Sequence record: NC_048173.1
Direction: 5' to 3' (one strand)
DNA: 64,000 nucleotides
Shown: piece after piece, positions 966-57,489 of the stretch
Numbering within the stretch: the first letter of the stretch is position 1
How the letters are laid out: each line of letters starts with the position of its first letter
Translations under genes and position numbers: made by a program
Notes under the pieces: model-generated
Databases searched by the model: none
Seen by the model: the letters and a program-made list of their open reading frames with translations, nothing else
What the model was told of the DNA's origin: nothing

Positions 966-1465
966 TGGCAACTATTCATACGCTTTCTGGTGCGGTTAAA
1001 TTACCTACCGATGTTTCCGCACACTTTCGCTCTGCTCATGCTTTGGCCAGAAACATCGACGCGCAAATTTACCAGCCACTGGTAATGGCCTTAGAGAAGC
1101 AATCGATGCGCGGTGATGTATCTAACATTGTGCTGGTTGAAACAATGACCATGGACGTCGCCGAAGCCATTACCCTTTCGTACAGTATGGGCTTTAATCT
1201 CCCGCTGGAGTTGGCTGCGGACGTTCGCGGGTTAGAACTGGAAAATGGCGAAGTGATGCTGATTAGCGGTAAGCTTGAGCGTGTAGATGCCGAACTGGTC
1301 AGAATGCGCCGGTCTATTATCATCACCCCGACCCAAATCAACGCCATGTCGGTTGACGGCAATATGCTTGATGAGTCGCTGGCGTTTATTCTGCAAAAGC
1401 AGATGATGGAATTCAAAGGACTCTACCCGCATCGCCCAGTTAGCGATGCTGTGAAAGCGCTGTAA
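965..1465 (+). CDS. Hypothetical phage protein
   Basis: 166-aa ORF, TAATG stop/start coupling. Confidence 0.75.
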   Translation: MATIHTLSGAVKLPTDVSAHFRSAHALARNIDAQIYQPLVMALEKQSMRGDVSNIVLVETMTMDVAEAITLSYSMGFNLPLELAADVRGLELENGEVMLISGKLERVDAELVRMRRSIIITPTQINAMSVDGNMLDESLAFILQKQMMEFKGLYPHRPVSDAVKAL

Positions 1466-1476
1466 TAAATCGGGGG

Positions 1477-1503
1477 TTTTTTACGATACCCCCTCTTACT
1501 ATA
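1477..1503 (+). promoter_or_regulatory. Candidate middle promoter TTTTTTAC-N15-TATA, overlapping a GGGGG/CCCCC hairpin
   Basis: Motif read directly; 25 nt upstream of ATG 1529. Confidence 0.6.
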
Positions 1504-1528
1504 CATCCACTGCTATGGAACTATTCTA

Positions 1529-2455
1529 ATGTCACATCTCGAAGATCAATTACGTAACTTTCACATGTCGTCATCGCAGTCCCTTTTACTTCGCCAGCTC
1601 GGTGTATTGGATAACGATGCCGTTCTCGATTCATCGGATACAACTGCAATTGAACGCAAAGCAATCCTGCAACTGGCACAAGATGTTCTGAACGGTAAGA
1701 AGCTTTATCAGGTCAGAATTTCATCAGACGGTGAAGGCCCACGTCCGCCGGTGAAACGCAATTTGTGTAAACTTGATTTGGGGGGCTACGTCTATACCGA
1801 CAGTTATGCCGTGAGCACGATGACGTTTGCGTTAGTGTTCGGTATGGCCATCAGAACCTACGTGCATGAAAATCAACACTGTATCTGCGTCCGTGAAGAT
1901 GGGGAAATCCAGTTTAACCTGTCAGTGCTGGGTATCCAATATATATCTGTGTCGCAAGCGTTCACCGCGATGCCGCAGCACGAAGAAATTTCTGACAAGC
2001 TGGGCCAGATCACTGCGTTCATCAAAGCAACATTGTTGGCGCGTGGCAAGGTTAAATTCGATATAAACGGTGCGTTGGGTTGGGAACAAGACCGCCATGT
2101 ACTCGCGCACTATATTCCTCGTCGTGGTACGTGGAAAGAATATAAGCAGTCGATGATTGTTAAGCTGCCTTTCCTTGGCGAGATGAGACAAATCGATATG
2201 CTGGTTGATTTATCGGACATTGTTTCGGACGCTCTCCCACGCGTCACGTTCTTGTACCAAAATATCGACGGCGATGTTATTTCGCTCGAAAAACTGACAC
2301 CTGTGCCGGATTGTAAGCCTGAAAAGTATACCACTGATGTTATCTTCAGTGAGTATCACGACACAGTGCTGCTCACCGCCGACCTGTTCGATATCAAAGA
2401 TAACGTGCAGGAAATCGAACTCCTCAATACCTTCAAATTCTATTACAAGGGCTAA
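1529..2455 (+). CDS. Hypothetical phage protein
   Basis: 308-aa ORF. Confidence 0.8.
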   Translation: MSHLEDQLRNFHMSSSQSLLLRQLGVLDNDAVLDSSDTTAIERKAILQLAQDVLNGKKLYQVRISSDGEGPRPPVKRNLCKLDLGGYVYTDSYAVSTMTFALVFGMAIRTYVHENQHCICVREDGEIQFNLSVLGIQYISVSQAFTAMPQHEEISDKLGQITAFIKATLLARGKVKFDINGALGWEQDRHVLAHYIPRRGTWKEYKQSMIVKLPFLGEMRQIDMLVDLSDIVSDALPRVTFLYQNIDGDVISLEKLTPVPDCKPEKYTTDVIFSEYHDTVLLTADLFDIKDNVQEIELLNTFKFYYKG

Positions 2456-2458
2456 GAC

Positions 2459-3352
2459 ATGTCTCAACGTTTTAATAACTACTTCAGAGATTATAACCAC
2501 GTTCCGGATAAACGTGCATTGATGCTCCGTACCGCGGGTCGTCTGATGATTGCCATTCTTTTCGATAAACCGATTATCGTTATCGGTACCGATTATGACA
2601 ATCTGGAAGGTGAAGCGCGCGAAGGCGAGCTGGACGTTTCTCTACTGGAGCGTCGTTTCCAGAATCGCACCAGCGTCAGCAAGATCGACGTGCCGGAATT
2701 CATCCCGGAAGAAGTGCGCCACTGGCAAAATCACCCTAACTACAAAAACATCGACCTGCGCGCCGCAATTGAATCCTCACACGCGGCGTTCGGGTTGCCG
2801 TTCCTCGAACACTTCGGTGAGTTCTTCGAGAAGGTTGACGAGCTGTCGTGGAAAGTCGAACAGGGCCAATTGGTTTGCATCGATAAGCCGGGGCTGCAGG
2901 CTGCAGCCCGTGAATGGCTGCAGGCATTCCGTGAATCTCCGTACTACAGTGCAAAAGAAGCGGCGATGAATATCTCCCGCGACTTAACCACGTATATCGG
3001 CTTCATTGAAAACGGTGTACTGGACGAGCACGAGCGTACCCACACGCTGAAGTCGGCACATCTGTACTTCATGCGTATGTTCCGTTGGCTGCCTCTACCG
3101 GAAGCGTCAGACGGTTATGCCCTGTGGCGTCAAACACTGGAAGAAGACCTCGGCTTCCCGGATGAAATGTCCAGTGACTGGCCGCAGGTTTGGCCATGTG
3201 GCCCGGTCGGACATCCGGATGAGCTCTTCGACCGTCAGTTCCCGATTGTCAAAACTGATACCAACCTCGGCGGTTTCGGTCAGGATGTCCACGGTGGTTA
3301 TGCGTTCTACCTGCCAGAGTATGTAGTAGCGCAGTATATGTTCGACTGCTAA
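2459..3352 (+). CDS. Hypothetical phage protein
   Basis: 297-aa ORF followed by a terminator. Confidence 0.8.
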   Translation: MSQRFNNYFRDYNHVPDKRALMLRTAGRLMIAILFDKPIIVIGTDYDNLEGEAREGELDVSLLERRFQNRTSVSKIDVPEFIPEEVRHWQNHPNYKNIDLRAAIESSHAAFGLPFLEHFGEFFEKVDELSWKVEQGQLVCIDKPGLQAAAREWLQAFRESPYYSAKEAAMNISRDLTTYIGFIENGVLDEHERTHTLKSAHLYFMRMFRWLPLPEASDGYALWRQTLEEDLGFPDEMSSDWPQVWPCGPVGHPDELFDRQFPIVKTDTNLGGFGQDVHGGYAFYLPEYVVAQYMFDC

Positions 3353-3356
3353 TACA

Positions 3357-3390
3357 AAGACCCCACTTCGGTGGGGTTCTTTATTTTTTT
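3357..3390 (+). terminator. Intrinsic terminator (CCCCAC-TTCG-GTGGGG + T tract)
   Basis: Perfect stem, cUUCGg loop, T run. Confidence 0.85.
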
Positions 3391-3414
3391 ATGAGATGGC
3401 CGTCTAGACGCACA

Positions 3415-3441
3415 TTTTTTACAGTTCACCTGTTTGATATA
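3415..3441 (+). promoter_or_regulatory. Candidate middle promoter TTTTTTAC-N15-TATA
   Basis: 21 nt upstream of ATG 3463. Confidence 0.6.
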
Positions 3442-3462
3442 GTAGAAAGGAGAGATTGCGCA

Positions 3463-3837
3463 ATGAAAAACTTTTTTGACTACTTGAGGGCGGGTGAGAT
3501 TCCTCGTGAAGTGGTTTATGACCGAAGCAAGTATAATACATTCATGGCTTTTTTGGTCACCTCTCCGTACTTCAAGACTTTTTCCGATGAAATGACAACC
3601 GTGGAGGAACGGGTTCAGTTCGACCTGCCTGACGTAGTAGAGTGCCACTCAGCATTGTCGTTAGCTGACGTGTCTACAATGATAAAAAATCAAGACCATC
3701 TGGACTACTTACTGCGGTCACTGGTCGATAAGCTACTGCGTGAAGAGGATACATATGAGTCAGTCTTCGCTGCATTGCTTGACTACTATTACATGGTTCG
3801 TAACTATAACCGTTTCCCACTGAATACTGTACACTAA
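3463..3837 (+). CDS. Hypothetical phage protein (start reassigned to ATG 3463)
   Basis: AAGGAG RBS; promoter motif lies inside the longer ORF-track start. Confidence 0.75.
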   Translation: MKNFFDYLRAGEIPREVVYDRSKYNTFMAFLVTSPYFKTFSDEMTTVEERVQFDLPDVVECHSALSLADVSTMIKNQDHLDYLLRSLVDKLLREEDTYESVFAALLDYYYMVRNYNRFPLNTVH

Positions 3838-32755: not shown

Positions 32756-34456
32756 ATGTTCGTCATTAACGTCATGCATACCAGTATGGGCTTTCGCATC
32801 GAAGTGCCTGTACGGGTTATCGAATTAGCTATTTTAAAGTTCGCTGATGAAAACTTGCACGCGCCTAAGATGGGGCGCGACCATGGGAGAATAACCGTCG
32901 AAAAGGGGGACGCCTATTACGTACACGTTCCCTCAATGAACTGGTTCTACTTCCACAAGGACTACTTCCATCGCATTAAGCAGATTGTCCTGAATACTGC
33001 GATTGAGTACAACAAGCAAGTGGAGGTGAAAGAACACACCTACCAACGTAAGGAACCGTACAAGTGCGAATTCGATAACTACGGCTTTCAGATGGAGGTA
33101 ACCGACCCCGAGTCGCGTTTCTTCTATCAGAACGAAGTGGTGGAAAAAGCACTTGACCCGCTGTACCTGCAAATCATCTTTGCGATTCAAACCGGGCGTG
33201 GGAAAACCAAGTCGGCGCAGAAGGTGATGGTAAAGCGCGGCGTACGTACGGTTCTGATTCACCGACCGACTTACGTTGATAAGTGGAAGTTCGACTGTAT
33301 TGAAGATGAGTCTGGGCTGCGGGTAGATGACAAACACGTCTACGTGGCGAAAGGGACGCAGGGCATTTATGACCTGATTGAGGATGGCCGCAGCGGTAAG
33401 TTAGACCGGATGGGAATAAAGGTTGTTATCCTGCCCACTGTCTCCCTGTTTAACTTCATGAAAGAAGCGATTGCAACCATGGCCTCCAGCCCGGTTGACT
33501 TCGAGTCGTTCTATGACGATATCGGCGTCGGTCAGGTGGTGTACGATGAAGTGCACGAACACTTCTTACTCGTGTACCTCAGCGGGATTCTGTTGAACCC
33601 GCCGTACTCACTGGAGATGTCCGCGACGTTGAAGCCGGGGGCTGCGAAGAAGTTTATCGCTGACCGGTATCTCGAGCGTTTTCCTCTACGTTTTCGTGTC
33701 TCGGTACCGTATATCCCGGTGGTTGATATTCGTGGGCTGTATTACAGCATTGATGACCCGGGCTTTATTCGCCGTGTGGCCAGAATGTCGCCGTACAACC
33801 ACAAATTGTTCGAGCAGCAGCTCCTCAAACACAAACTCGAAGATTCGTACTTCTCGATGGTGTTTGATATCCTGAAGCGGTCGTACCTCGATAAGTATGA
33901 GTCCGGTCAAAAGGCGTTGGTGTTCTTTGCTCTGGTTGAGATGTGTGAAGCATTCACGAAGTATGTGAAGCATCGCCTTCGTAACGGAGACGGACCACCG
34001 GGCTTGACTGTGGCGAAGTACAATGCGGGGGACAGCTACGACGAGTTCATTGCTGCAGACATCGGGGTCTCGACTCCGGGGAAAGCAGGTACGGCAATTG
34101 ACATACCCGGTTTGGTGGTCGCTATCGTGACCATCGCTATCGATGACCGTCAGTTGAATGAACAGATTGCAGGCCGCCCGCGTGAGGTGACGAAGTGGGA
34201 TTTGACACCGAAAGTGTTCTTCCTGCATTGCAGTGAAATGCCAAAGCACTTGCAGTATTTGGCCTCACGGCAAGAGTCGCTTAAGGAAGTAGTGAAGTCA
34301 TTTACGACCTCCTTCTCCCCTTACGTTATAAGGAAAACGCATGCTAGCTCCTCCTTCTCCAGCAGTGCCCCTTCCGCCGTACCAAGGTTTAAGTCTATCA
34401 AGTCTCCTCGAAAAGGTTTTACGGGCTTACCCGGCCGTCGAGGACGCCGTCGTTAA
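32756..34456 (+). CDS. Superfamily 2 (DEAH-type) helicase (phiKZ gp75-like)
   Basis: QTGRGKT Walker A, DEVH, SAT; ATG 32756 with GAGGGG RBS. Confidence 0.9.
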   Translation: MFVINVMHTSMGFRIEVPVRVIELAILKFADENLHAPKMGRDHGRITVEKGDAYYVHVPSMNWFYFHKDYFHRIKQIVLNTAIEYNKQVEVKEHTYQRKEPYKCEFDNYGFQMEVTDPESRFFYQNEVVEKALDPLYLQIIFAIQTGRGKTKSAQKVMVKRGVRTVLIHRPTYVDKWKFDCIEDESGLRVDDKHVYVAKGTQGIYDLIEDGRSGKLDRMGIKVVILPTVSLFNFMKEAIATMASSPVDFESFYDDIGVGQVVYDEVHEHFLLVYLSGILLNPPYSLEMSATLKPGAAKKFIADRYLERFPLRFRVSVPYIPVVDIRGLYYSIDDPGFIRRVARMSPYNHKLFEQQLLKHKLEDSYFSMVFDILKRSYLDKYESGQKALVFFALVEMCEAFTKYVKHRLRNGDGPPGLTVAKYNAGDSYDEFIAADIGVSTPGKAGTAIDIPGLVVAIVTIAIDDRQLNEQIAGRPREVTKWDLTPKVFFLHCSEMPKHLQYLASRQESLKEVVKSFTTSFSPYVIRKTHASSSFSSSAPSAVPRFKSIKSPRKGFTGLPGRRGRRR

Positions 34457-35419: not shown

Positions 35420-37585
35420 ATGAGTCAGGAAACTGAAAACCACGGTCGCCCGTCACTGGGTGGCCCTGTTCACCAGACCGATGAAGTTTTGCCGGCTGCT
35501 GAAGACCACGGCTTCAAAAAGATTGACGAAGAGGATTACGATCCGGAAGCTGCCCGTAAACTGTGGTTAGCCGATCGTGAAAAGAGACGTTTAGCTGCAC
35601 AGGGAGTTTCAGATGGTGGTGAAGGTAGCAATACTGGGGGGCATGCCTCGCCAAATGCGCGCGTGGTCAATCCAAGCACTCCTGTTAGCCGGGGTGCAGA
35701 TAGCGAGCGAGCGGGAAGTGGAGGAGGACAGGAAGTCGAGACTGCCGTTCACCGACACGTCGATCCAACCCCTGAACGCAGCTTTGTTCAGCACCCCGCT
35801 GTCGACGAAGCAATCCCCGCTCCCGCCACACGAGTTTCTCCACAGCCAGTACATGAAGCTGACCTTGCCCCGGCACAGCCGCAGCATGCGCCGGCCCAAA
35901 CGCAGGAAGTGAAAGATGGCCAACAGCAAAAAGCCCCGCAAGCGCAAAGCGCACAAGTCGTTCTTCAACACGGAGAGACTGGAGGAGCGGAACGAGTCCA
36001 ACCAACTCCATCTGCAGCAGCAGACCGCCCAGCTGTCCAGCCGGCTGCAAACGTTGCGCCATCAGAGTCCGGTGCGGATGACGACCATGAGAACGCGACG
36101 CGTCGCATAGCGTCTCTGCTGGAATCACCGGTTCCGCAAGGTGAACGTAACGAGCTGATGAAACTGCTGGACGATGATCCGGTAGGGATGTTGGCAGGGA
36201 TGGCGCTGGTCGGTGGGTTACGTAACCTCGCCCAGTCGTCTAGCGGCTTTAACAAGTTCTTCCGCTCGCTGGAGCGCAGCAAAGACGGTGCCCCGGTCTT
36301 CCGTAACCCGCAAGAAGAAGATGTCTATAATCGCATCATGCAAATTATGCAGATTGCGTCTCCTTCAATGCAGAACGGTAATCAGGCCCAGTCTGAAGCA
36401 GCCCTGCGTGACGATATCCAATGGAAACAGCATCTGGATACCGGCACTGACGAGCCGTTCGTCATTAAGAACCACCCACAACAGGGTGCGGGTCTGATGA
36501 AGCTTGTGTACCGTCGCCAGAACTCTGGTGCGCCGGTTACCGTGTTCTTGCCGGCCTCGGGCTTCTTTATTACCTCGAAGGCACCGCATGAGAACGACTT
36601 CTGTGACTACGATGTAGCGCAGACCATGGATACCAATCAGGTGGGTTTGTCTACCTTCGGTATTCTGCTGTCGGCGTCCTCTGGTCTGTACCTGAAGCAC
36701 ATGGTTAACTTCGCGCTGAAGTTTGTGGTCGACACCACGTTGGACGTGGGCGGTGGCGATATGCACCAAACCCTGTACAACAAAATCGACGAGCGTGATT
36801 ACTGGCTGGTTGTCATGGCCTGTACCATTGCCAAATACCCGGGCGGTATTCCGTGGCTGATGGCGTGTACTGAACCGCAGTGTACCTTCGAAGAAGAGCA
36901 GAAGCTGAATATCGCCCGTAGCATCCGCTACGCGAACGGCATCTTCTCCCCGTCCCAGCTCGAGCTGATTAACCGTCAGCGTAATAAAGAGCCGATGACC
37001 TTCGTTGAGCAAGAAGCGTACCGTAAGGCCCACAAAGTTGACCCCGCCTCGAAATGGGTTGACGGCGACCTGACGTTCCGCTTTGCGCACGCGTCCATTG
37101 CCCGCTATATCGACACCTCTGAAGAGTGGGTGGCTGATATCAACCAGTCCACGACGGAAGCACTGGGGAACTATGCAACAGAGCAAGAGCGTAACAGCTA
37201 CATGCGTACTGCCGCTGAGACCCGCCGTCTGACCCGTTATCTGCACTTCATCGAATCCATCACCGGTAAGGCCGATGGTGACGAAGAGCCGTACGTTGAG
37301 CGTGACCCGGTAAAAATCCGCGAAGTCTTGGTAGCCATGTCTTCTGACCGTGCCTTCGTGGCGCGCTTTGAAGCGGCTATCGAACACTTCAACGAACGTA
37401 GCCGTCTGGCCATCTTCGGGTACATGTCGCACAAGTGCCCAAGTTGTGGTGCAGCGACCGGTGAGAAAGAAGGCGCGTTCCGTGGTATCGTTGAGATTTC
37501 ACCGGACAGACTTTTTTTCGTGCTCTCTCGAGTGGTGTACGAGATTCAGAAACTCTTAACAGATCAATACGAAAGTATTGGTTAG
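35420..37585 (+). CDS. Baseplate-hub/tail assembly chaperone-like protein (T4 gp26-like CxxC pairs), long disordered N-terminus
   Basis: 721 aa; CTEPQC and KCPSCG; function inferred. Confidence 0.55.
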   Translation: MSQETENHGRPSLGGPVHQTDEVLPAAEDHGFKKIDEEDYDPEAARKLWLADREKRRLAAQGVSDGGEGSNTGGHASPNARVVNPSTPVSRGADSERAGSGGGQEVETAVHRHVDPTPERSFVQHPAVDEAIPAPATRVSPQPVHEADLAPAQPQHAPAQTQEVKDGQQQKAPQAQSAQVVLQHGETGGAERVQPTPSAAADRPAVQPAANVAPSESGADDDHENATRRIASLLESPVPQGERNELMKLLDDDPVGMLAGMALVGGLRNLAQSSSGFNKFFRSLERSKDGAPVFRNPQEEDVYNRIMQIMQIASPSMQNGNQAQSEAALRDDIQWKQHLDTGTDEPFVIKNHPQQGAGLMKLVYRRQNSGAPVTVFLPASGFFITSKAPHENDFCDYDVAQTMDTNQVGLSTFGILLSASSGLYLKHMVNFALKFVVDTTLDVGGGDMHQTLYNKIDERDYWLVVMACTIAKYPGGIPWLMACTEPQCTFEEEQKLNIARSIRYANGIFSPSQLELINRQRNKEPMTFVEQEAYRKAHKVDPASKWVDGDLTFRFAHASIARYIDTSEEWVADINQSTTEALGNYATEQERNSYMRTAAETRRLTRYLHFIESITGKADGDEEPYVERDPVKIREVLVAMSSDRAFVARFEAAIEHFNERSRLAIFGYMSHKCPSCGAATGEKEGAFRGIVEISPDRLFFVLSRVVYEIQKLLTDQYESIG
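37513..37544 (+). promoter_or_regulatory. Predicted programmed -1 ribosomal frameshift signal (T TTT TTC + hairpin TCTCG/CGAGA)
   Basis: In-frame X XXY YYZ heptamer; -1 frame opens at 37495 and runs to 37974. Confidence 0.7.
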
Positions 37586-37974
37586 AGAATGGCAGCTTAA
37601 GCCACGAAACCCTTATCAACACGCTTAAGCTTGACACCACCTCTCTGTTTAAGCGTCGAGATCATCGGGCGGTAACTTACCAAGAGGCGTACGACGAGCT
37701 AATGGCTTCGTACGATGCCTCGTTAGGTTTGGACACGGGCCGATTCCATGTGGCGATGTCCAGTCAGGAAGATCCTCTGGCTAACTCGCTGTATCAGATA
37801 TGGGTGGAAACGTTTATTAGGGAGGATGTCTATAAGTATCTGGGGTTAAACTTCCAGCAGTTCTTAGACCAGCCACGCTGGATTATCGACATGCAGCTGA
37901 AGTCCATCAAACGACGTCATCAAGACGAGAGTGCGTTGGCAACCGAGATACAAAACAGCCTTCCGAAAGACTAA
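37516..37974 (+). CDS. Frameshift extension domain (gpGT 'T'/T4 gp51-like); also contains ATG 37702
   Basis: No stop 37495-37971, no ATG/GTG/TTG in frame before 37702; YLGLNFQQFLDQPRW motif. Confidence 0.65.
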   Translation, partial: FRALSSGVRDSETLNRSIRKYWLENGSLSHETLINTLKLDTTSLFKRRDHRAVTYQEAYDELMASYDASLGLDTGRFHVAMSSQEDPLANSLYQIWVETFIREDVYKYLGLNFQQFLDQPRWIIDMQLKSIKRRHQDESALATEIQNSLPKD

Positions 37975-37977
37975 CAC

Positions 37978-38006
37978 GGTGCCCTTCGGGGCACCTTTCT
38001 TTTTTT
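37978..38006 (+). terminator. Intrinsic terminator (GGTGCCC-TTCG-GGGCACC)
   Basis: Perfect stem, cUUCGg loop, T run. Confidence 0.9.
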
Positions 38007-57458: not shown

Positions 57459-57489
57459 AACCACCCTCCGGGGTGGTTGTTTTTTTTTT
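57459..57489 (+). terminator. Intrinsic terminator (AACCACCC-TCCG-GGGTGGTT)
   Basis: 8-bp stem, T10 run. Confidence 0.9.

Follow-up and report, generated by a model that had tools for sequence, protein, structure and literature searches.

Results

gp41 of phage Derbicus contains a slippery heptamer followed by an open -1 frame

The stretch of DNA analyzed in this work, hereafter the window, comprises 64,000 nucleotides (nt) of sequence record NC_048173.1 and belongs to Erwinia phage Derbicus; the annotation used was that of GenBank record MK514282, to which the region is 100% identical at unchanged coordinates. Two consecutive genes of the window, gp41 (DERBICUS_41) and gp42, are annotated as hypothetical and are separated by what appears as an intergenic gap (Table 1). 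gp41 is a homologue of PHIKZ077 of phage phiKZ (tblastn E 2e-12; common PHROG 4585), and phiKZ gp077 is the Chimalliviridae core gene cg18, listed as a "hypothetical protein" in Table S3 of the core-genome study (PMC10299810). Homology with phiKZ gp077 together with conserved synteny (see below) places gp41 among the cg18 genes, and Derbicus itself belongs to the chimallin-encoding, nucleus-forming phages (PMC10299810).

Near its 3' end, the gp41 open reading frame (ORF) reads AGA CTT TTT TTC GTG, and the T TTT TTC heptamer is in the X XXY YYZ register of -1 frameshift sites. The -1 frame is closed upstream by a TGA at 37492-37494 and then remains open until its own stop codon at 37972-37974. 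The first ATG, GTG or TTG in this frame is the ATG at 37702, codon 70 of the open frame, where gp42 is annotated to start. From the codon count, the predicted products are a protein of 721 amino acids (aa) in the 0 frame and a protein of 700 + 151 = 851 aa upon a -1 shift at the heptamer (151 codons, 37519-37971). The heptamer and its register, the limits of the -1 frame, its 69 codons lacking a start, the 116 nt left over after the gp41 stop and the size of the two products all agree with the original prediction, which had been made from the sequence of the window and which called for a programmed -1 frameshift producing a pair of proteins similar to G and GT of phage lambda.

To put the open -1 frame in perspective, 45 in-frame heptamers in window ORFs of at least 150 aa were considered; the median open -1 run at these sites was 11 codons. 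Two other long -1 runs were present, both in antisense ORFs opposite annotated genes. The long open run at the gp41 heptamer is therefore more than would be expected by chance.

Table 1. Features of the gp41-gp42 region (positions in the window).
Feature	Coordinates	Strand	Remarks
gp41 (DERBICUS_41), 0-frame product, 721 aa	35420..37585	+	GenBank "hypothetical"; homologue of phiKZ gp077
Slippery heptamer T TTT TTC, X XXY YYZ register	37513..37519	+	Leu-Phe-Phe in the 0 frame; Phe699-Phe700
Open -1 frame, 159 codons plus stop	37495..37974	+	tblastn matches; PHROGs 7580/12109
Dual-coding overlap, 23 0-frame codons and start of the predicted -1 extension	37513..37585	+	pN/pS; near-invariance of DNA
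Annotated "intergenic gap", 116 nt, protein-coding in the -1 frame	37586..37701	+	pN/pS
gp42 as annotated, 90 aa	37702..37974	+	GenBank "hypothetical"; C-terminal part of the predicted -1 extension
Hairpin of 5 bp, TCTCG / 9-nt loop / CGAGA	37526..37544	+	6 nt after the heptamer
First Cys pair CX4C, C483 and C488	36866..36883	+	Invariant in 19 homologues
Second Cys pair CX2C, C673 and C676	37436..37447	+	23 codons before the slip site
Intrinsic-terminator-like hairpin and T tract	37978..38006	+	Directly 3' of the -1 ORF stop

The arrangement is conserved in distant relatives

The region was compared in 51 loci. These include phages of the genera Derbicus-, Seoul-, Erskine-, Wellington- and Machinavirus, more distant phages (phiKZ, 201phi2-1, RSL2, Ea35-70, Moabite, the Bacillus phage AgentSmith, JM-2012, Aeromonas D3, PCH45, RP12, FBKp24, Proteus phage 10 and BONAISHI), twelve non-duplicate IMG/VR contigs and eleven metagenome contigs. 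Some of these loci are related to one another, and together they represent about 18-20 lineages below ~50% protein identity. In all 51 loci, phiKZ included, cg18 is followed by an ORF in the -1 frame that is already open before the 0-frame stop is reached, and the T TTT TTN heptamer is perfect and in register in 48 of them. Conservation of the heptamer and of the open -1 frame in orthologs at the phiKZ position had been put forward as a check of the original prediction; the presence of the arrangement in every locus makes it far wider than was then supposed. A survey seeded by the phiKZ/201phi2-1 pair recovered 6 loci only.

The distance from the heptamer to the -1 stop is steady over the 51 loci (151-175 codons); the tail of the 0 frame is variable, with 10 to 46 codons. 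In many genomes, a stop closes the -1 frame 3-18 nt upstream of the heptamer. The T run has a length of 6-8 and is not lengthened in any lineage. In Aeromonas D3 only six T's are present and the heptamer is still perfect, indicating that it is the register and not the length of the run that is conserved.

At shorter evolutionary distances, 15 phages from five genera all carry T TTT TTC in register with a 0-frame TAG at an equal distance, and the corresponding -1 ORFs span 159-207 codons, the position of their first start codon ranging between codons 2 and 79 of the open frame. The four Derbicusvirus genomes, which are 78-100% identical in DNA, do not differ over ~105 nt surrounding the heptamer, and the flanks vary. 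The SPN3US homologue shows ~44% protein identity, yet the heptamer and the next ~45 nt are kept almost base for base. This near-invariance of the DNA following the heptamer can be attributed to dual coding.

The whole -1 ORF, used as a tblastn query, aligned to 64 phage records, the alignments starting at its residues 2-4 and thus at the heptamer, inside the upstream gene. A search with the gp41 domain retrieved 210 records, among them phiKZ, where the match is PHIKZ077. The extensions are homologous to each other (PHROGs 7580/12109) and can be aligned across 20 lineages. In phiKZ, no ATG, GTG or TTG occurs for 87 codons after the heptamer, resulting in a 218-nt "gap" before gp76.4, and this start-less stretch aligns with the -1 ORF of 201phi2-1 from residue 1 (E 4e-10). 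No fusion of the two parts in a single frame was found among the database homologues of gp41, the lengths of which range from 616 to 721 aa.

Both reading frames are under selection

Selection was assessed by the counting method of Nei and Gojobori in 16 genomes from the Derbicus-to-Machina clade. For codons of the gap, the ratio of nonsynonymous to synonymous differences (pN/pS) was 0.30 in the -1 frame, 1.10 in the 0 frame and 2.43 in the +1 frame. Stop codons in the -1 frame of relatives, which the original prediction had raised as a possible objection, were absent from the gap in all 16 genomes, and the 0 frame contained 1-5 stops per genome. The gap is under purifying selection as protein in the -1 frame only, which accounts for the nucleotides that had been noted as unexplained after the gp41 stop. 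In the overlap, pN/pS was 0.51 in the -1 frame, 0.61 in the 0 frame and 1.76 in the +1 frame, and pS was about half that of the flanks, a signature of dual coding.

The point at which the short product ends is maintained as well. Firstly, the 0-frame TAG was found at the same offset in 19 distinct sequences. Secondly, the -1 codon that spans this TAG is always CTA, TTA or ATA in these sequences, although CTA is the least used of the codons for Leu in the rest of these ORFs (14 of 313). The position of the TAG is thus held by the choice of an NTA codon in the -1 frame.

A similar analysis was made for the heptamer. In all of 18 lineages, T is the last base of the codon preceding the Phe pair, and TTT is used for the first Phe; genes of the cg18 type otherwise favour TTC. 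The joint chance of this codon choice is ~1e-18 when lineages are taken as independent, a value that is overstated because the lineages are related. The codon choice nevertheless exceeds what would be needed to encode Phe-Phe alone.

The downstream frame does not start at a conserved position

Counted from the heptamer, the first ATG, GTG or TTG of the downstream ORF may come as early as codon 11 or as late as codon 90. No canonical start is present within 40 nt of the 0-frame stop in 24 of 39 genomes, and almost none of the candidate starts in these 39 genomes is preceded by a Shine-Dalgarno sequence. The frame is devoid of starts for 63-89 codons in Derbicus, phiKZ and AgentSmith. In Derbicus, the ATG assigned to gp42 corresponds to an internal Met of the extension that is not conserved outside Derbicusvirus, and inspection of the sequence revealed no good Shine-Dalgarno at the usual spacing.

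GenBank records do not agree on the start of the downstream ORF: the codon called is CTG in Ea35-70 and TTG in 201phi2-1 and Phobos, and phiKZ, Derbicus and AgentSmith are given a far-downstream ATG. Such calls are expected when a gene caller must assign a start to a frame that has none.

Probable ribosomal frameshifting and alternative explanations

Combined, these results make recoding at the T run of gp41 very likely. Judged from sequence comparisons, its probable form is a -1 ribosomal frameshift at T TTT TTC that would give proteins of 721 and 851 aa. Two features of X XXY YYZ frameshift sites are present, namely the in-register heptamer and an open -1 frame with a coding signature and no start of its own. 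In addition, all-pyrimidine heptamers and UUY codons in the A site are reported to be prone to shifting in E. coli (PMC4066793). Most ribosomes would stay in the 0 frame and stop at 37585, producing the 721-aa protein with its short conserved terminal helix. Some ribosomes would slip back by one base with the two Phe codons in the P and A sites, tRNA-Phe re-pairing on UUU in both sites, and would then read the -1 frame up to 37974. In the resulting 851-aa protein, the terminal helix would be swapped for an extension of ~150 residues, of which annotated gp42 would be the last 90. We infer that the shift is ribosomal rather than transcriptional, and both isoforms are probably needed in a fixed ratio.

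A number of observations weigh against this explanation. The support for the long product is comparative throughout. The heptamer is imperfect (G TTT TTT) in 3 of the 51 loci, all of them 201phi2-1-like contigs. Phe-Phe is invariant as amino acids in the 0 frame, so that part of the conservation of the heptamer is at the protein level. A start at or near the 0-frame stop is present in RP12, 201phi2-1 and RSL2, where independent initiation may occur alongside the shift. Runs of 6-8 T's would also suit slippage by RNA polymerase, and these phages have unusual polymerases of their own. Lastly, no stimulator was detected. Folding of the downstream region in 13 phages revealed no stimulatory structure (z-scores -0.9 to +1.2), RNAalifold on 17 sequences gave -1.09 kcal/mol and no covarying pair, no Rfam match was obtained at the locus, and inspection of the sequence revealed no Shine-Dalgarno-like stimulator at a dnaX-like spacing. 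A stimulatory element is not obligatory at X XXY YYZ sites.

The original prediction had pointed out a TCTCG/CGAGA hairpin starting 6 nt after the heptamer. The two complementary segments (37526-37530 and 37540-37544) are indeed present at this place, but a role as a conserved stimulator is not supported: the hairpin is absent from the minimum-energy fold computed for Derbicus, its stability does not exceed that of shuffled sequence, and its positions are paired in 79% of cells, none of the changes being compensatory and 3-4 of 15 distinct sequences having it broken. Two further candidates were examined and discarded. Changes in a long-range pseudoknot between the hairpin loop and a stretch ~100 nt downstream are non-compensatory and follow the protein sequence (15 sequences). 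A hairpin enclosing the slip site (upstream CGGAC, downstream GTCCG) is not complementary in Derbicus and would not stimulate.

The same long protein could also be produced by transcriptional slippage, the phage or host RNA polymerase stuttering on the T run and generating a fraction of mRNAs with an altered run length. Chimalliviruses transcribe with their own non-canonical polymerases, all 51 loci contain a homopolymer of 6-8 T's, and no conserved RNA structure follows it. In addition, T runs of at least 7 are nearly absent from the coding sequence of the window, as if they were hazardous; however, such avoidance fits ribosomal slippage equally well. In bacteria, transcriptional slippage has been described on runs of about 9 A or T (PMC5009743), compared to 6-8 here, and the runs have not been lengthened in any lineage. 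What is kept is the X XXY YYZ register, even with the six T's of Aeromonas D3, and ribosomal slippage is for this reason better supported. We consider a transcriptional origin of the shift to be unlikely.

A further possibility is that the region consists of two genes and that the downstream ORF is translated alone, through initiation at ATG 37702 or at a non-canonical start, or through termination-reinitiation; the heptamer would then be a by-product of the conserved Phe-Phe. The GenBank records examined do present two coding sequences (CDSs), SEGD1 excepted, the Phe pair is invariant at the protein level, and in a few relatives a start coincides with the 0-frame stop or lies near it. However, protein-level conservation of the -1 frame sets in at the heptamer, that is upstream of every possible start and in part upstream of the 0-frame stop. 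The position of the start is not conserved, there being none for 63-89 codons in Derbicus, phiKZ and AgentSmith, stops close the -1 frame just upstream of the heptamer, and the codon choice in the heptamer goes beyond the requirement for Phe-Phe. Taken with these properties of the frame, independent translation of a second gene is very improbable as the sole explanation.

That the T run is a homopolymer sequencing error in one continuous gene, as the original prediction had cautioned, or that the region is a decaying pseudogene, is hardly credible in spite of the single 795-aa CDS across both frames in the SEGD1 record and of one short Logan contig that joins the frames, since the 51 loci are in agreement, although they come from many laboratories and several sequencing platforms, selection also acts on the tail of the 0 frame and on its stop, and both frames are under purifying selection rather than in decay.

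The two joined sequences were considered as natural fusions and rejected. In SEGD1, which is the same species as SPN3US, the fused CDS (1114-3501 of the locus) shares its T run with SPN3US, and the two differ in a short upstream stretch that matches poorly; this single CDS is probably a sequence error or a strain-specific change. The Logan contig (L007/P0010) is 1.6 kb only and changes frame at least twice. In both cases the sequence seems to be faulty locally, at a place that precedes the T run.

Genome context of gp41

According to the GenBank annotation, gp41 and gp42 are preceded by helicase and RNA-polymerase subunit genes and followed by a phiKZ-gp79-like gene, a virion RNA-polymerase subunit gene and a DNA polymerase gene. 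gp41 is thus not adjacent to a tape-measure gene, from which it had originally been noted to be far. Synteny with phiKZ gp75-gp80 is kept, the Derbicus neighbours being homologous to phiKZ gp78, gp79 and gp80. The terminator-like stem directly after the -1 stop is kept in the four Derbicusvirus genomes. Its position suggests that the transcription unit ends after the extension and not after the 0-frame stop.

The T7 of gp41 is the sole A or T run of at least 7 inside a long + strand ORF of the window. The remaining runs of this length lie outside + strand ORFs of at least 80 aa, except for one in an ORF of 88 aa, and several of the T runs not included in ORFs are terminator-like T tails. On the + strand, T runs of 7-10 are ~5 times commoner than in shuffled sequences (17 vs 3 T7 windows), for example at 57480-57489. 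Almost all of these runs are located outside long ORFs, many of them being terminator tails that follow GC hairpins, and A runs are not similarly enriched. This pattern fits rightward transcription of most of the window.

A separate overlap was noticed upstream. gp39, the annotated gene after the helicase gene, overlaps the 3' end of helicase gp38 by 116 nt in another frame (34341-34456). The annotations of SPN3US and Caitlin contain comparable overlaps (113 and 65 nt, respectively), and a shorter gene is called in pEa_SNUABM_38 and CR5. Either the start is mis-called or this is a second conserved overlap.

Domains and structure models of the two predicted products

The first ~224 residues of gp41 (35420-36091) form a low-complexity region rich in Pro, Ala and Gln, which varies in length and sequence among relatives and which swamped word-based protein searches. 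Residues ~225-721 form a conserved domain. This domain carries two Cys pairs, and the four Cys residues probably constitute one zinc site, as judged from the sequence. The RSL2 homologue (gene 2021-3547 of the locus) lacks both Cys pairs, and its heptamer and -1 extension are kept; the joint loss of both pairs suggests a single site.

An AlphaFold2 model of residues 225-721 reached a mean predicted local distance difference test score (pLDDT) of 78.8 and a predicted template modelling (TM) score of 0.82. The last helix of the model (471-493) corresponds to residues 695-717 of gp41 and begins at the slip site, so that the two isoforms would diverge exactly where this helix starts. The model of the extension was poor (pLDDT 54.6); the extension comprises ~150 residues and is probably helical. 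A database protein of 165 aa (P0023) contains recognisable blocks of an SPN3US-type extension in reversed order, so that it opens with the C-terminal motif and closes with the slip-site motif; this looks like an assembly or prediction artefact.

In the searches of Pfam, NCBIfam, PHROGs and PDB, with single sequences and profiles, neither gp41 nor the extension matched a named family. gp41 matched PHROGs 8054/4585, and its model matched the folds of chimallivirus homologues in BFVD (E 1e-25 to 1e-16); Foldseek of the gp41 domain against PDB returned nothing. For the extension, the BFVD fold search retrieved its own unnamed family only, and PDB matches to primase small subunits (E ~0.6) were dismissed as chance. 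The domain resemblances proposed in the original prediction were therefore not recovered. The extension had been likened to the T part of lambda GT and to T4 gp51: no likeness to either was detectable in Pfam, NCBIfam, PHROGs, PDB sequences or BFVD folds, where the extension matched only its own family. The motif quoted as its end lies inside the extension, and the CxxC region described as gp26-like showed no such relation at the sequence level.

The gp41 model also matched BFVD predicted structures named "Baseplate hub assembly protein, bacteriophage T4-like" or "Baseplate protein" (E 3e-4 to 2e-3). These proteins of 225-285 aa cover the domain in part, with target-normalised TM scores of 0.39-0.51 and a query-normalised TM score of ~0.3. 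The best matches carrying the baseplate hub name had an E of 3e-4, a probability of 1.0 and a target-normalised TM score of 0.46-0.51. A match named "T4 gp51-like" was insignificant (E 0.48). Two GenBank records name gp41 homologues as baseplate hub assembly protein. The corresponding Pfam/NCBIfam profile did not match gp41 or 7 diverse homologues, even with E values up to 10. From these models, the fold match offers a modest lead for the upstream domain and does not indicate family membership.

The homologue gp081 is not mentioned in the full text of the cryo-electron microscopy paper on the Goslar virion, and the record of the 201phi2-1 homologue carries no mass-spectrometry note, which its neighbours have. 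The cg18 protein is apparently not a virion component. On the strength of the fold models, it may be a non-virion assembly factor, possibly of the baseplate hub or the tail.

Discussion

Consequences for a core gene of nucleus-forming phages

cg18 is a core gene of nucleus-forming jumbo phages that is still a "hypothetical protein". We found no description of a frameshift in cg18 in the papers and records searched, including the 2016 recoding review and the 2023 core-genome paper, and it is likewise not mentioned in the 2025 review of nucleus-forming phages or with the 2026 Goslar structure. None of the annotated records examined other than SEGD1 has a joined CDS, and no proteomic data on SPN3US gp39/gp40 or phiKZ gp77/gp76.4 were found in the literature. 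The cg18 frameshift predicted here would be a new instance of a two-isoform logic that is already known from G/GT.

If the prediction is correct, one core protein exists in two isoforms for which nobody has looked, and the small downstream "genes" in at least 64 phage records are fragments of the extension, which have been called with differing and sometimes odd starts or left as gaps of up to 218 nt (phiKZ). Proteomic databases built on current annotations would be unable to detect the long form. It would also be a rare example of a recoding signal kept throughout a virus family outside the tail chaperone gene. The distinction between ribosomal and polymerase slippage is of interest in these phages as they separate nuclear transcription, carried out by their own polymerases, from translation. 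These points concern researchers working on jumbo phages as well as on recoding, and they can be tested with existing types of data.

Comparison with known systems

The frameshift sites of dnaX (tau/gamma) and of IS elements share with gp41 an X XXY YYZ heptamer, bacterial ribosomes and two products per gene. At the dnaX and IS sites, the shift is stimulated by defined elements, of which one, similar to a Shine-Dalgarno sequence, is located upstream and the other, a hairpin or pseudoknot, downstream; in contrast, no stimulator is detectable at gp41. In dnaX, the shifted product is the shorter one, whereas at gp41 the predicted shifted product is the longer one.

The T4-like baseplate hub assembly proteins (the T4 gp51/gp26 group) resemble gp41 by the fold match in BFVD and by two GenBank names. 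They differ in that the matched proteins, of 225-285 aa, account for part of the gp41 domain, and no match to them was obtained in Pfam, NCBIfam or PDB sequences. We know of no frameshift in genes of the T4 gp51/gp26 group.

The closest parallel is with lambda G/GT, a strategy conserved in long-tailed phages "except T4" (PMC5009743). In both cases, the -1 shift, predicted for gp41, is close to the gene's 3' end and gives a short product and a C-terminally extended product with a common N-terminal body (PMC5009743). In both, the arrangement is kept across very divergent phages despite low sequence similarity, and the cg18 protein, like the G/GT products, is apparently non-virion. No strong stimulatory structure is evident at gp41, and lambda G/GT is not known to have a strong stimulator either. 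The differences are also clear. The two systems show no relation in sequence or fold: tail-assembly-chaperone families of Pfam and PHROGs matched neither gp41 nor the extension, and Foldseek matches to tail-assembly chaperones had E values above 0.3 and probabilities of at most 0.25. The lambda products are about 140 and 280 aa long, and those predicted for gp41 are far larger, with 721 and 851 aa. gp41 is not beside the tape-measure gene; it is located among genes for helicase, RNA-polymerase subunits and DNA polymerase. Its heptamer is T-rich, unlike that of lambda. The G/GT likeness claimed at the outset thus holds for the logic, two isoforms from one predicted shift, as seen in the structure of the gene, and does not extend to membership of the family.

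One tentative reading, which we regard as doubtful but worth stating, is that the cg18 isoforms are the chimallivirus functional counterpart of lambda G/GT, acting in a fixed ratio as non-virion assembly factors of the baseplate hub or tail. Under this reading, giant phages would possess a strategy reported to be absent from T4-type myoviruses, located in a gene that is unrelated, relocated and much larger, and the frameshift would have been kept since before the split of the Pseudomonas, enterobacterial, Vibrio and Bacillus phage lineages.

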